64,000 bases of DNA from Octopus bimaculoides (GCF_001194135.2 NC_068990.1:89360056-89424055), one strand, 5' to 3'. Shown: positions 1,992 through 36,442, counted from the stretch's first letter. The notes: generated by a model from the sequence alone, not told the origin. Program-made: numbers and translations.

Positions 1992-4900
1992 CTCAGTTGT
2001 TATCTGGGGAATATGAAATGACCAATCCGATATGTGAGGAAGAAGTGTAAGTCATTTTTTCACAGTCCAGTCACTCAACTTGCTATTATAGTTGTTTAAC
2101 CCTTTAATGTTCAGGGTTTTTTTTTTTTTTTTTGTCAAATGTATTGCTTATTTATTCACATGGCCATNNNNNNNNNNGAGCTTAATGGCTGACAACACGT
2201 GCGTCTCTGATCGTGAGCAGGAGTAGTAGGAGCCATGTGTTGAGAGAGATTCTTTGGGGTTTGAATAAAATGTAACAAAAGTAAAGTTTGAAGGAAATAT
2301 TAACCATTTTTCATGTTTTCTAAAGGTAAGCAAATAGGAAAACAGCTGCTACCCAAATCGTGTTACACAGTGTAATTCCTTTGTTGAATAACTGTCTTTT
2401 CATACAAATCTTACCTGAAACCAGTTTTTCATAATGTTTAAACATTTACCTAGATAAACACTGTAGAATGAATGCAGGTATGCACACCCACATTTTACAT
2501 CAAATCCATCTCCTCCTCTCCAGCATACACCTTCAGCCAGTAAAAAACATTTACCTGATTAGTAAGTCTTCACTCTTCAACCTTAGGCTCATTACTAAGC
2601 TGTGTACCATCTCTATATCTTCCACATCATCATCATCGTTTAACATCTGCCTTCCATGCTGGCATAGGTTGGACTGAGGACTGCAAGCCAGAAGGCTGCA
2701 CCAAGCTCCCACTATTTAAATTTTTTCCATGGCTTAAATTAAAAGAAGGAATGGCAGTTTTCTTGGGGTTTTTTTCAGGGTCTTTGAGAATAGTGACAGA
2801 AAATAAAAAGGAAGTCATCACAGGTAACTTGGCTTGAATTCTTACAACCAAGTAGTGGATTCCTCAAATTGTACCCAAGGATCAAGCGATCACTCAAAAA
2901 CAGGAATGTTCTCACTGAAAAACCTCCACACCGATTCTGTCTGTCAAATTTCACTCACAAGACTTTGATTTACTCCCACTGCATGGCATCTTTTGATCGT
3001 GCAGCAAAATTGAATCCAAGACTATGATAGTTGTGAAGCAAACTTCTTAAACACACAAACAGGTCTTACACCCTACAATCATGTTTACTCCTCTACTCTT
3101 GGAGTGGTTGGTATTAGGAAGGGCATCCAGCCATGCCAAATCAGACTGGAGTCTGGTGCAGGCTTCCAGCTTACCAGCCCTGGTCAAACTGTCCAACCCA
3201 TGCCAACAGACACTGGTCAATAGTGGTGTTGTTGGTTGCAGGTTTCAAACTGGCCAACCACCAGATCAATGTATTTCTAAGTGCAAAAGTAACAAGGGAG
3301 TGCCTGTAACTCATTGAAGAACAAATGTCTTTAAAAATTTCATTTGCGAAATAGCTGTTTTTCAATGTTCTTGATGTTTTCTTGCCTTGATGATATATAT
3401 TAGCAAAAAATGTACCACCCTCACAACACACACACTTCAATTTTATGACCATTTTCCTATTTTTGAACAGGTCAGGCTGGTCCTCTCCAGCATAGTGCTT
3501 TGCTCTGAGCTGCAGTTCTTTGTTATCACCTTCATGAGATCAGTCTCTTCCACTTTGTCCCATGTCTTTCAGTCTTCATCCACTTGAAGCACTTAACACT
3601 TCTACATACAACTGGTTTATTCCATACACATAACATGTCCATACCAGCATTATCTTCTCTCTTGACTATCCTGTCTGATTTCTTTTATATCCAATTTTCT
3701 TCTGTTAATTTGCTTCCTGCAAACCTCTCACCTCGTTATTTTACCCTTTCAGTGTCAACGTTGTGTTTATTGATAAAGATGGTGAAAAACATCATATAAG
3801 AGGGAAAATTGGTGATAATATTCTATATCTTGCTCACAGATATAACATTCCCCTTGAAGGTATGGTAATATTTATATATCATGTTTTTATATATCTGTCA
3901 AGGTGCAATTATCTTAGTTTCCGTATATCACAACATCAAATTAAATCCCTTTCCAAGTTAGTGCTGCTAAGTAATTCTTTTAATACAAGTAAAAAGATAT
4001 ATTTTTCAACACATAAGTACTGGTAGAACAGCATATATAGGATAAAATCCTTACAGAGCAGAAAAATTTGTCAGCAACCAGCCATGAGACTCAAACTCAT
4101 CCCTTCAATTTCCAGTCAAAATTCTTTACTCTTTAAGCTAAACTATTTTACTGACAAATTCTTCTGCAATTTAGAATTTATAAACTCATCTAGAAACGCT
4201 AGATCGAATAGAAATTACGTCAGATGTAAACAAACATAAGTTTGTTTTTAAAGTGCTGAAATGTATTGTAGTAGAAGTAGAAAGATATATTTTTTTCAGC
4301 ATGTAAATACTGATAGAAAAGCATGTATAGGATAAAATCCTTACAGAGTACAAAAATGTTTTAATTCTGAATTCTCTCTTTAATTGTAGGTGCCTGTGAA
4401 GCATCGTTGGCATGTTCAACTTGTCATGTGTATGTGAATGAAGACTATCTTGACAAACTAGAAGAACCGAAAGAAGAGTAAGCGACCCTTTCATCACTTA
4501 TCCCCGTCTTTCTTCTATTCCTGGCTGTGATACTCTCACTCTGTGCTTAGAATTCCCTTTCAGAGCAATTCAAAATTTTTCAGTTACTTAGTAAAATAAT
4601 TATCATAGTCATTAAATTATATATTTGTTACTTTAAAAGAAAAATTAATTAGAAAATGATGAGCAGTGGGAGTGGCTGCCATGATCTTTATCTTTTACTT
4701 GTTTCAGTCTGGCCATGCTGGGGCATCGTATTGAAGGGAGTTTTAATCGAACAAATCAACCCCAGGACTTACACTCACAAGGCCATCTAGAGAGTCATTT
4801 GTAGTAGTGACGGTAAAGATCTGCAGTATTTGTTCCACCTTTATATATATATCTTAGATTCTAATCTGCTGAGATCAACTCTTGGATTGATAAAATAGAG

Positions 4901-6363
4901 TACCAGTGAAGTATTAGAGTCAATTTAATTGGTTAACCTCCTCCCTTAAATTTTTGGCCTTGTGCCTGTGTTAGAAACATTTTGTTCAATTGGTTCTCTC
5001 ATCAAGTTATCAGCAACAACTCATCTCAGACATTTAAATATTTGAACAACGAAAGAAGAGTTTTACATTGTAGATTCTTGATTTCTAATTTTCTTTCTTC
5101 AGAGAAGACGACATGTTAGATATGGCACCGTTTTTGAAAGAAAATTCCAGACTTGGTAAGACATTTATTATATGGTAAATTCATTAAATTGTCAGACAAT
5201 ATTTAGTTATTGCTCTTTATATTCGGAGTTCAACTCCTGCTGAGGTCGACTTTAGCTTTCATCCCTTTGTGGCAAATAAAATAAAGCACAAGACAAATAC
5301 TGGAGCTGATGTTGTCAACTATACCCTGCACCAAACTGGGTGACCCTATGTTAGAAATAATTGTGATAAGGAAGATGATGAATCAGTGGAGTTGGTGACC
5401 AAATAGCAGAAATAGAAGCATGTGAGTCTTGTCTATGTCATTGTTCTGCTATGATCTACACATGTAACACTTGACCCTTTAGCATTTAAACCAACCATAT
5501 CTGTCCCAAATATCCTACCTGTTTGTATGTAAACCCTACAATGTCATTCTAAAAGTAAACAATCACATCATTAAAATCTTGAAGCTATGAGATAATGCAT
5601 AATTACTTGAAAACAATGTGAATAAACAAGCGTCACCTTTCAGAGTTACCTGAATGTTAATGGGTTGATCTATGGGATGAAATTGAAGGAATAATGTTAT
5701 ACACAGCATATATATTATTCCTAAAACAAATGATTAAAGGGACCAAATGAAAGATGTAATGTATTACAGAAAATCAACCAATACATATATATATATATAT
5801 ATATATATATATATCATGGATGTTGTGCCTCATGGAGGAGATCACAGTTGACTGATATATCTTGAGATATGAGGTTCTTGAGAAGATCCACCCACCTCAG
5901 CAAGACATGATGTCTCTTTTGTTTAAGAAGGAACACAGGATAGTCCAGTTGAATATTTGAATTTCTACATTTCTGTGCATTTTTCATTATTCTGGTCTTA
6001 TTTTGAACCTGAAGAAGACAGATGTATTTTTGAAATATTGTCGAGTTCAATAAACAAAATCAATCTGTTTCTTTATTTCATATTGCACTCTTTATATTCT
6101 GAGATCAACTATGTCTTTCATTCATCATTTTGGGGTTCATAAAATAAGGTGCCCGTTGAGCACTGGGGTTGATCTAATTGATTAGTCCTTTCCTTCCAAC
6201 CTTTCAGGCCTTGTGCCTATAATAGAAAGTATTATTATTACCACCTTTTCTTCTTTCAGGTTGTCAAATTATTTTGACTAAAGAAATGGAAGGCCTTGAA
6301 CTTACTCTACCTCCAGCTACACGAAACTTCTACGTTGATGGCCATGAACCTACGCCCCATTGA
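1992..6363 (+). CDS. FDX2: Ferredoxin-2 (adrenodoxin-like mitochondrial 2Fe-2S ferredoxin), 5 exons seen, 5'-incomplete
   Basis: Exons 1992-2046, 3753-3859, 4390-4477, 5103-5155, 6260-6363, all AG/GT flanked with matching phases. Translation ..[108 protein letters not shown]. It has the 2Fe-2S motif C-x5-C-x2-C...C and the FDX2-type C-terminus RNFYVDGH. The start/transit-peptide exon was not identified. Confidence 0.95.
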
Positions 6364-35400: not shown

Positions 35401-36442
35401 ACAGGGTGGGGCAGAAAGGACGAATGTTCTTTGCTCTCTCTCTCTCTCTCTCTCTCTCTCTCTCTTTCTCTCTCTCTATCTCTATCTCTCTCTATCTCTC
35501 TCTATCTCTCTCTCTCTCTATCTCTCTCTANNNNNNNNNNCTCTCTCTCTCTCTCTCTCTCTCTCTCTCTCTCTCTCTCTCTCTCTCTCTCTCTCTCTCT
35601 CTCTCTCTCTCTGATGACCAGCTCATTTCCAGGTTTGCTGACTTTCCTTGGCCCTCTTAGTCCCCTTATTTGTCCAGGTGTGATTGTTTCTTGTGCGGGG
35701 AAACCTCAAAGCATGTGTGTATATACATTGGATGATTTGAAGGAAGCTATTCATGTGGAAGTCGCTCAAATCGACAGAGCAACGCTGGAGAGAGTGGATG
35801 CCTTCAGAAATGCATCAATGAAACTGGACACCACATGATGAATATTGTTTTACACACTTGATTTTGATGTCAAAATTTGTTTGCAGCTAAAATTAATGAT
35901 TTTTGTGAATCTTTCAAAAAACGTCCATCCTCTCTGCCTCAGCTTGTATAACTGTTATGTCTCAAGCTACTGCTATCTAGCACCTTAGGATGACCGCTAC
36001 ACAACTGCTACTTAACACTCCTACCACGGCCAGACTACCTCTATTTATGTCTTGGGAGATCCTACTTCTTTGCCTGGGGGCGTCAAGGCAACAATAACAA
36101 AAGAAAACAAGCAAATTTAAGGTTCTTCATTCTCAATCTCTCAGTCCATTAAGAAAATGTTTTATTGATAATGTAGTGTCACTTTGGTATTGCAATGCTT
36201 ATTGTCAATGTGTATTGTTTTTCTTCTTTAAAACGGTTCATTAAGAAATTTTTCAACAATGCTTTCTAAACAAGTTTTATATATTTTTAGTTTTGTGTCT
36301 TTTCCATATTTTTTACAGGTACAAAAAATACAGAATTCGTTGCAGTGAATGTTGGCACGTTCCCAAAAAGGATGACAAGACCTACCCCAAGTGTCTTCGC
36401 TGTGATTCAATGTTGCGATTTACAACGAACCGAAGAAACTAA
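26435..36442 (+). CDS. ZGLP1: ZGLP1-like GATA-type zinc-finger protein, about 270 aa, 5 coding exons
   Basis: Exons 26435-26565 (ATG chosen as first in-frame; start uncertain), 28990-29322, 32870-33003, 34526-34616, 36319-36442, phases 2,2,1,2. It contains [28 protein letters not shown] (ZGLP1-type DPxFxGV motif) and [58 protein letters not shown]: a single GATA finger followed by the ZGLP1-type CxxC..CxxC unit. Confidence 0.9.
30305..30815 (-). mobile_element. Mariner transposase remnant with one terminal repeat
   Basis: [48 protein letters not shown]; TIR-like tatgaggctgaaaagtt at about 30306. Same family as 7020-7255. Confidence 0.85.
33436..33481 (-). ncRNA. Minimal type I hammerhead ribozyme motif (intact)
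   Basis: RNA: GACAC CUGACGA A GGCUG-(10-nt loop)-CAGCC GAAA CGUU^GUGUU. Conserved core, 5-bp stem II, palindromic AACGUU stem III, and stem I GACAC/GUGUU. Confidence 0.75.
33773..33818 (+). ncRNA. Minimal type I hammerhead ribozyme motif (one stem I mismatch)
   Basis: GACCC CUGACGA A GGCUG..CAGCC GAAA CGUU^GUGUU; same as the minus copy except A>C at 33776, creating a C-U mismatch in stem I. Confidence 0.65.
35424..35612. repeat. (CT)n/(CTAT)n microsatellite with a 10-N gap
   Basis: Direct observation. Confidence 0.95.
35955..36088. repeat. Unclassified about 135-bp interspersed repeat (second copy at about 49425-49560)
   Basis: Both copies share gctactgctatctagcacctt..gtcttgggagatcctacttcttt.cctggggg in the same orientation. 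Confidence 0.75.

Follow-up and report, generated by a model that had tools for sequence, protein, structure and literature searches.

The locus considered here lies in a 64-kb stretch of the Octopus bimaculoides genome (the window, meaning the whole stretch analysed), in which the gene FDX2 stands upstream of ZGLP1 on the same strand. It raises the question of whether this linkage is ancestral, a coincidence or a product of assembly and, if it is ancestral, what has kept the genes together. The window is AT-rich and repeat-rich (~36% GC) and contains ten runs of N; Pfam scans were made on selected open reading frames (ORFs) within it. A preliminary description had placed FDX2 (+) about 20 kb before ZGLP1 (+), with a C2H2 zinc-finger gene and a UBE2U-like gene between them, and our gene models agree with this layout. 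The region has biological edges, position 1992 being the acceptor of FDX2 exon 2 and position 36442 the ZGLP1 stop codon. FDX2 stop and ZGLP1 ATG are separated by 20,071 bp (6364..26434). This interval holds two genes, a 13-finger C2H2 gene and the UBE2U-like gene, each on the minus strand, and in addition three assembly gaps and the remnant of a mariner element (7028-7276). From the comparisons described below we consider FDX2-UBE2U-ZGLP1 in octopus to be a retained ancestral gene neighbourhood, with a probability of roughly 0.8.

Recurrence of the neighbourhood in other genomes

We compared the octopus block with other genomes by taking 10 kb on either side of FDX2 or ZGLP1 and searching the DNA again with tblastn. 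In the brachiopod Lingula (locus L010) FDX2 (+, 10001-12439) is followed by a UBE2U-like gene with a UQ_con domain (363 amino acids; -, 13707-16848) and then by a ZGLP1-type gene (P0189; +, from 20320). The same three genes were detected in the gastropod Lottia (locus L011), where CACHD1 (-) precedes FDX2 (+, 10001-12716), UBE2U-like exons (-, 17184-15978) and ZGLP1 finger exons (+, 22006-22441). On a 102-Mb scaffold of the bivalve Pinctada (VSWD01000010.1) the order is CACHD1 (-), FDX2 (+, 99,721,076-99,724,994), a UQ_con gene of 333 amino acids (-), ZGLP1 (+, 99,754,089-99,754,627) and a gene of ROR type with Ig, Frizzled, Kringle and Tyr-kinase domains (-). FDX2 (+), then a UBE2U-like gene (-) and then an innexin gene were found in the annelid Capitella (locus L013). 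In a teleost, the seahorse (locus L006), FDX2/Fer2 (+, 2627-4387) lies 5.6 kb before ZGLP1 (+, 10001-11499), and no trace of UBE2U was found in that locus. Within the block UBE2U is tail-to-tail with FDX2 and head-to-head with ZGLP1.

The preliminary description had taken the linkage to be old, and the comparison bears this out. FDX2 followed by ZGLP1 on the same strand occurs in three classes of Mollusca, in Brachiopoda and in Vertebrata (the teleost here, birds and mammals in the literature), and the linkage dates at least to the protostome-deuterostome ancestor; the three-gene form was seen in Lophotrochozoa only. UBE2U, whose association with the pair elsewhere had been marked for checking, accompanies it in Lottia and Lingula, may do so in Pinctada as an E2 of uncertain type, and stays with FDX2 in Capitella. 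Since UBE2U recurs between FDX2 and ZGLP1 in other lophotrochozoans it belonged to the block ancestrally, which leaves the C2H2 gene as the sole intruder.

If FDX2 and ZGLP1 had been joined independently in octopus and in vertebrates, the resemblance would be coincidence or convergence. We found nothing in favour of this reading. We estimated the chance of this: ZGLP1 placed at random in a genome of ~2.7 Gb would fall within +/-35 kb of FDX2 and on the same strand with a probability of ~1e-5, and for random placement at the observed distance and orientation our estimate per genome is ~1e-5 to 1e-4. The order, the orientation and the E2 in between recur in Lottia, Lingula and Pinctada, and FDX2 with UBE2U in Capitella, and this recurrence in four further lophotrochozoan genomes effectively refutes chance. 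Since the linkage is common to molluscs, a brachiopod and vertebrates, an independent origin is not credible.

Several observations weigh against a retained neighbourhood. In Capitella the 10 kb downstream hold no ZGLP1. Starting from ZGLP1 in Mya arenaria, a tick and a spider, we met neither FDX2 nor UBE2U over the same distance, and starting from FDX2 in the cnidarian Exaiptasia we met no gene of the block; the 10-kb limit on the flanks, together with the large genomes of the tick and the spider, makes the negatives there weak. The Pinctada E2 is known only as 'UQ_con, 333 aa' and its UBE2U type is uncertain, and the adjacency of ROR was seen in this one species. The animals whose neighbourhoods were compared are lophotrochozoans, a tick, a spider, a cnidarian and a teleost; among invertebrate deuterostomes, amphioxus (Branchiostoma floridae, XP_035699491.1), Saccoglossus (XP_006813549.1) and Amphiura (XP_072014303.1) carry ZGLP1. 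Against a constraint on the block, in particular, stand two points: at the DNA level only the exons of FDX2 and ZGLP1 match other loci, and the link between UBE2U and ZGLP1 was lost in vertebrates without apparent harm. In Mya ZGLP1 is flanked on both sides by tyrosine-kinase genes in place of UBE2U; these were considered as ROR genes and are not clearly ROR.

The ancestor would have had three small, closely packed genes, FDX2 forward, UBE2U reverse and ZGLP1 forward, and this form may date to the protostome-deuterostome ancestor or, at the latest, to the lophotrochozoan ancestor. The ancestral block was probably bordered by CACHD1 beyond FDX2 and by a ROR-type receptor kinase beyond ZGLP1. 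The octopus would have kept the order and the orientations, the block being lengthened by transposon debris and one C2H2 insertion; it spans 20 kb, versus ~8-9 kb in Lingula and Lottia, which is a 2-3-fold expansion.

Two mollusc genomes yielded further observations. In Lottia gigantea (KB203019.1) the ZGLP1-type gene is unannotated, with zinc-site exons at 22006-22095 and 22331-22441 (+) and an intron in the same position, and an annotated gene of 199 amino acids (-, 14071-16052) is apparently only the 3' part of the UBE2U-like gene. In Mercenaria mercenaria, FDX2 (P0099) and a ZGLP1-like gene (P0201) are both on a contig of 104,084,471 bp, which is probably one chromosome.

Gene models and assembly of the octopus block

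The ZGLP1 gene was modelled as five plus-strand exons with canonical GT-AG introns. Exon 1 (26435-26565) contains the ATG, exon 2 (28990-29322) a conserved motif, RRK..P.KS...DP.FRG, and exon 3 lies at 32870-33003; exon 4 (34526-34616) encodes a GATA-type C4 finger, CESC...CNAC, and ends at the GIR|YKKY intron, and exon 5 (36319-36442) encodes a second C4 zinc site, CSEC...CLRC, followed by the stop codon. The model is identical to XP_014770617.1 at 270 of 270 residues. NCBI names that protein 'GATA-type zinc finger protein 1 [Octopus bimaculoides]'; the octopus gene is, in other words, already annotated as ZGLP1. Its C-terminal 71 residues hold the GATA finger and then the second C4 site, with the finger at amino acids 203-258 of 270, and the eight zinc cysteines are invariant in an alignment of octopus with tick, spider, lizard, bird and fish ZGLP1. 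These eight cysteines are the mark of the ZGLP1 family according to a preprint on the chicken gene (bioRxiv 10.64898/2026.07.26.740788). Matches to named ZGLP1 proteins of vertebrates and invertebrates reached 101-146 bits over 90-100% of the query; GATA1-4 and AreA aligned to residues 3-39 only, the first finger, at no more than 58 bits. An exhaustive profile search returned at least 150 clusters sharing the C-terminal architecture, including Haliotis, Mytilus, Gigantopelta, Lingula, amphioxus, Saccoglossus, a brittle star, bichir and eels, and the GIR|YKKY intron position was common to every genomic copy examined (Pinctada, Mya, Lottia, tick, spider and seahorse). The second motif of the family, upstream of the fingers in exon 2, reads in full RRK..(K)P.KS...DP.FRG(V/I)T...SQL.I; it has no Pfam model and is carried by octopus, Haliotis, Mytilus, Potamilus, Lingula, Amphiura and Saccoglossus. 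From scores, cysteines, motif and intron position, and without a formal tree, we assigned the gene at 26435-36442 to ZGLP1 and not to the classical GATA factors. The germ-cell role of ZGLP1 is known from mouse only (cited in PMC12338730).

The searches with ZGLP1 also detected relatives of other kinds. Intronless ORFs of 118 amino acids, resembling ZGLP1, occur at 10001-10357 of three loci (L007, L008 and L009) from ENA metagenome assemblies (ERZ25069810 and ERZ26167708), on long contigs of high coverage (up to 2.4 Mb). They are 63-67% identical to the octopus finger region, their third and fourth cysteines are shifted (RICYPTC / RICCPIC), and no FDX2 lies nearby. The protein that tops the exhaustive profile search, P0155 (1252 amino acids, from an ENA contig of ~4 kb), contains eight separate ZGLP1-type finger stretches, an architecture which differs from that of every named family member. 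In Mya arenaria (CP111024.1, locus L002) the 'ZGLP1-like' model of 97 amino acids at 6791-10456 consists of the finger exons only, and a gene of 432 amino acids just upstream on the same strand may be the mis-split N-terminal part of ZGLP1.

FDX2 is represented by coding exons 2-6 on the plus strand (1992-2046, 3753-3859, 4390-4477, 5103-5155 and 6260-6363, stop included), with GT-AG introns throughout. A search of 1-1991 with the Octopus vulgaris protein, whose amino acids 1-50 are the mitochondrial presequence encoded by exon 1, did not detect this exon; the gene is therefore cut by the window start and exon 1 lies upstream. The protein is 97% identical to that of Octopus vulgaris/sinensis and 93% to that of Argonauta. 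After brute-force splice testing had fixed the donor it reads EEPKEEEDD, the same as in O. vulgaris. It matches Pfam Fer2 (E=4.9e-9), has the four cluster cysteines (C-x5-C-x2-C ... C), including RLGCQ, and carries the C-terminal tail of the FDX2 type. The alignment with human FDX2 (8RMC) scored 189 bits versus ~86-89 bits with adrenodoxin/FDX1, and on these sequence features the gene at 1992-6363 is FDX2, not FDX1/adrenodoxin.

The UBE2U-like gene on the minus strand was traced by tblastn, splice sites and reading frame to UBC-domain exons at 19224-19140, 18032-17940, 17071-16983 and 16389-<=16262; the model comprises these exons only, and the gene would have a further 5' exon and 3' exons. 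It matches Pfam UQ_con (E=5.7e-19) over profile positions 16-139 of 140, with the HPN motif in FCTIPFHPN. The best match in PDB was human UBE2U (1YRV, 78 bits, E=4e-21), followed by the next E2 at 53 bits, and by these matches the gene at 16262-19224 is UBE2U-like by descent. It lacks the catalytic Cys, as the exon at 16983-17071 (-) encodes Gln (CAG) at the E2 active site. The active-site stretch of this exon reads HPNVDPANGKVQLDF versus HPNVDPHTGQPCIDF in human (NGKVQLDF versus GQPCIDF), and the region is ~6 residues shorter in octopus. The Cys is kept in Lingula (GRPCIDF), Lottia (GEPCIDY) and Capitella (GKPCLNL). No alternative exon with a Cys motif was found in the sequenced DNA between the flanking exons, where the preceding intron contains a gap of 66 N. 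Because Gln replaces the Cys, the octopus protein probably has no E2 activity. Good splice sites and an open frame make the gene look like a Cys-less, UEV-like pseudo-enzyme and not like a dead gene.

The second gene in the interval is a single-exon C2H2 zinc-finger ORF at 8690-7416 (-), of 424 amino acids from the first Met, with 13 fingers repeating every 84 bp and matches to Pfam zf-C2H2 and zf-H2C2_2 (E down to 1e-104). No counterpart was found in the FDX2-UBE2U interval of Lottia, Lingula or Capitella, and none was called in the portion of the Pinctada interval covered. It is, as judged from this distribution, a lineage-specific insertion into the FDX2-UBE2U interval, in line with the earlier suspicion that it was a later intruder.

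The gaps in the window leave room for a scaffolding artefact, in which unrelated pieces were fused and the linkage is unreal. Two of them, at 19962-20022 and 25384-25815, lie between the known UBE2U-like exons and the ZGLP1 ATG, and no gene bridges either. The first sits in a TA microsatellite, with TA repeats on both flanks; at the second, an AT run is present on the right flank and not on the left. The remaining three gaps are intronic and are bridged by exons of a single gene in proper order, strand and frame: 2168-2177 in FDX2 intron 2, 17835-17900 (66 N) in an intron of the UBE2U-like gene, where the donor GTAAGT of the upstream exon lies 40 bp before the gap, and 35531-35540 in ZGLP1 intron 4, within a CT microsatellite. 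The octopus order agrees with three independent genomes, and as the order from UBE2U to ZGLP1 is repeated in Lottia, Lingula and Pinctada (with its untyped E2) a mis-join at the gaps is very unlikely; we regard an artefact as barely conceivable.

Transposon remnants and SINE-like ORFs make up much of the expansion of the octopus block. The mariner transposase fragment at 7028-7276 (-) lies directly 3' of the C2H2 gene, and a DDE_3 fragment at 30400-30642 (-) is inside ZGLP1 intron 2. SINE-like ORFs are repeated at, for example, 3051-3314, 47971-48207 and 51098-51361, and a reverse-transcriptase fragment at 61857-62189 (+) is close to the window end. Downstream of ZGLP1 an Elongin A gene (+) occupies 46.7-52.6 kb (parts at 46664-47512, 51788-51940 and 52460-52615); it has a TFIIS N-terminal helical bundle, a long Ser/Lys-rich exon and an Elongin_A (BC-box) domain over two downstream exons. 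A link of ELOA to the pair, which the preliminary description had raised, was not found, as no ELOA gene adjoins the block beside ZGLP1 in Pinctada, and we dropped ELOA as a block member.

The vertebrate arrangement

RAVER1/2, TYK2/JAK1 and PDE4A/B are duplicate pairs from the vertebrate genome duplications, and through them the human interval at 1p31.3 may be linked to that at 19p13.2. The published vertebrate order around the pair is ICAM5-ZGLP1-FDX2-RAVER1-TYK2-CDC37 (bioRxiv 10.64898/2026.07.26.740788; also PMC12338730), with PDE4A named only as an additional anchor in the flank (bioRxiv 10.64898/2026.07.26.740788), and the amniote FDX2-ZGLP1 interval serves as a synteny anchor in recent papers (bioRxiv 10.64898/2026.07.26.740788; PMC12338730). 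In this 19p13.2-type interval (ICAM5-ZGLP1-FDX2-RAVER1-TYK2) FDX2 is directly upstream of ZGLP1 on the same strand, and the seahorse agrees; unlike in octopus, where 20 kb and two minus-strand genes separate the two, no UBE2U lies between. Our literature search found no paper naming an annotated human FDX2-ZGLP1 readthrough; a mis-annotated fusion protein of turkey includes ZGLP1 (bioRxiv 10.64898/2026.07.26.740788).

At human 1p31.3 the orders PGM1-ROR1-UBE2U-CACHD1 (PMC5618647) and ROR1-CACHD1-RAVER2-JAK1...PDE4B (PMC4422726) were reported. In the resulting PGM1-ROR1-UBE2U-CACHD1-RAVER2-JAK1, UBE2U has a ROR kinase gene on one side and CACHD1 on the other; likewise a ROR-type kinase gene and CACHD1 flank FDX2-E2-ZGLP1 in Pinctada in the same relative order, and in Lottia CACHD1 flanks the block. 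Unlike the mollusc block, 1p31.3 is missing FDX2 and ZGLP1. Each human interval holds a different, complementary subset of the Pinctada order ROR-ZGLP1-UBE2U-FDX2-CACHD1 and is collinear with it, and the human strand orientations presumably match that order as well.

The two rounds of vertebrate genome duplication would have copied the block, and reciprocal loss would then have resolved the copies. One copy would have kept ROR1-UBE2U-CACHD1(-RAVER2-JAK1), now at human 1p31.3, and the other ZGLP1-FDX2(-RAVER1-TYK2), now at 19p13.2. Reciprocal loss has been described as one way in which a conserved pair can be broken up (Irimia et al. 2012, PMC3514665), and here it would account for the direct adjacency of FDX2 and ZGLP1 in human. 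The collinearity points to a single ancestral block that genome duplication followed by reciprocal loss divided in two, and the vertebrate arrangement is a derived state.

Retention of the block and its significance

The mechanism that we prefer for the retention is that control DNA of ZGLP1, as a germ-line transcription factor gene, is interleaved with its two small neighbours in a bystander arrangement, similar to that of genomic regulatory blocks, in which breaks would be selected against. That interleaved ZGLP1 regulation holds the block together is a tentative proposal, to which we give slightly less than even odds. Widely shared blocks have been ascribed to co-regulation or to regulatory DNA in bystander genes (PMC9023564; PMC3514665). 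With a transcription-factor gene next to small genes of unrelated function, the block fits the bystander pattern, and in octopus it survives its 2-3-fold expansion. The preliminary description had supposed a shared regulatory constraint, and for this we found no sign in the DNA, where conservation is confined to coding exons: when the UBE2U-ZGLP1 interval and the whole of 1-40 kb were compared by blastn and tblastx with the other loci (Lottia, Lingula, Pinctada, Capitella and others), exons were returned and no conserved non-coding sequence, an absence which at >500 million years is uninformative. It had also read retention in a lineage known for losing linkages as a hint of constraint. Retention in a coleoid is not exceptional, with 275 ancient microsyntenies kept in Euprymna versus 216 in scallop (Schmidbaur et al. 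2022, PMC9023564).

The block could also be ancestral and neutrally kept, as a tiny target for breakpoints that survived in octopus by luck and without shared regulation, and we take this seriously while stopping short of an even chance. The missing conserved non-coding DNA is consistent with it, as is the decay of the block in Mya, in Capitella (on the ZGLP1 side), in the tick and in the spider, and the separation of UBE2U in vertebrates. FDX2, moreover, is small and of housekeeping type, and it does not have the long introns that usually mark bystanders (criterion: PMC3514665). Against this, the octopus block is 20 kb long and rich in insertions, yet its order and orientation persist, so that the argument from a small target fails there, and widely shared blocks as a class are enriched for co-expression and regulatory linkage (PMC9023564; PMC3514665).

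A further explanation makes head-to-head UBE2U/ZGLP1 the constrained unit, with a shared divergent control region for germ cells and FDX2 as a passenger. Human UBE2U is testis-enriched and ZGLP1 is germ-cell specific. The 5'-5' orientation is kept in octopus, Lingula and Lottia, and in Pinctada with the untyped E2, and 5'-5' pairs are a class that Irimia et al. tied to co-regulation (PMC3514665). However, the two genes start 3.5 kb from each other in Lingula and >7 kb in octopus, so that this is no classical bidirectional promoter. Vertebrates split UBE2U from ZGLP1 and kept FDX2-ZGLP1, the supposedly incidental pair, and in octopus the catalytic cysteine of the UBE2U-like gene is gone. We consider this explanation improbable.

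Interleaved ZGLP1 regulation can be extended beyond the three genes. In that case the window would be a piece of a larger block of bilaterian age, CACHD1-FDX2-UBE2U-ZGLP1-ROR, perhaps continuing to RAVER and JAK, which was held by germ-line regulation of ZGLP1 and split into the 1p31.3 and 19p13.2 segments. Queries of Pinctada, Lottia and Mya DNA detected no ROR-like or CACHD1-like sequence in the window, which would therefore end within such a block. Taken as a whole this extension is doubtful.

The octopus block resembles the bilaterian microsyntenic blocks (Irimia et al. 2012, PMC3514665) and the 'metazoan microsyntenies' of coleoids (Schmidbaur et al. 2022, PMC9023564) in that neighbours keep their order and orientation across phyla, one transcription-factor gene stands among unrelated small neighbours, and the intergenic DNA is enlarged in the cephalopod. 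It differs in that no conserved non-coding elements were found that would support a regulatory block. With genomic regulatory blocks it shares a transcription factor gene for germ-line fate, ZGLP1, beside neighbours of housekeeping type, and a linkage that survives insertions; it differs in its small bystanders, which have no long conserved introns, and in that conserved non-coding elements were not detected. The FDX2-UBE2U-ZGLP1 block is not named in the main texts of PMC3514665 and PMC9023564 or in the Schmidbaur 2022 supplements searched. Neither the invertebrate three-gene block nor its reading in terms of 1p31 and 19p13 was found in the literature searched, and they may sit unnamed in large microsynteny tables. 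The octopus block is a real but ordinary case of a well-known phenomenon and no new kind of system.

As such it is a well-anchored addition to the catalogue of ancient neighbourhoods, preserved although the coleoid genome is heavily rearranged, and one of its genes, ZGLP1, is the determinant of oogenic fate in mouse, with an evolution outside vertebrates that is barely described. The block can serve as a synteny anchor for locating unannotated ZGLP1 genes, as in Lottia, and the tight human FDX2-ZGLP1 pair may be read as the outcome of reciprocal gene loss between the duplicated segments of 1p31.3 and 19p13.2. If the larger block held by germ-line regulation were real, ZGLP1 would be a factor for germ-cell fate of ancient origin, with a control region that could be mapped in invertebrates, and the Cys-less UBE2U-like gene of octopus would have been retained mainly as a carrier of regulatory DNA.

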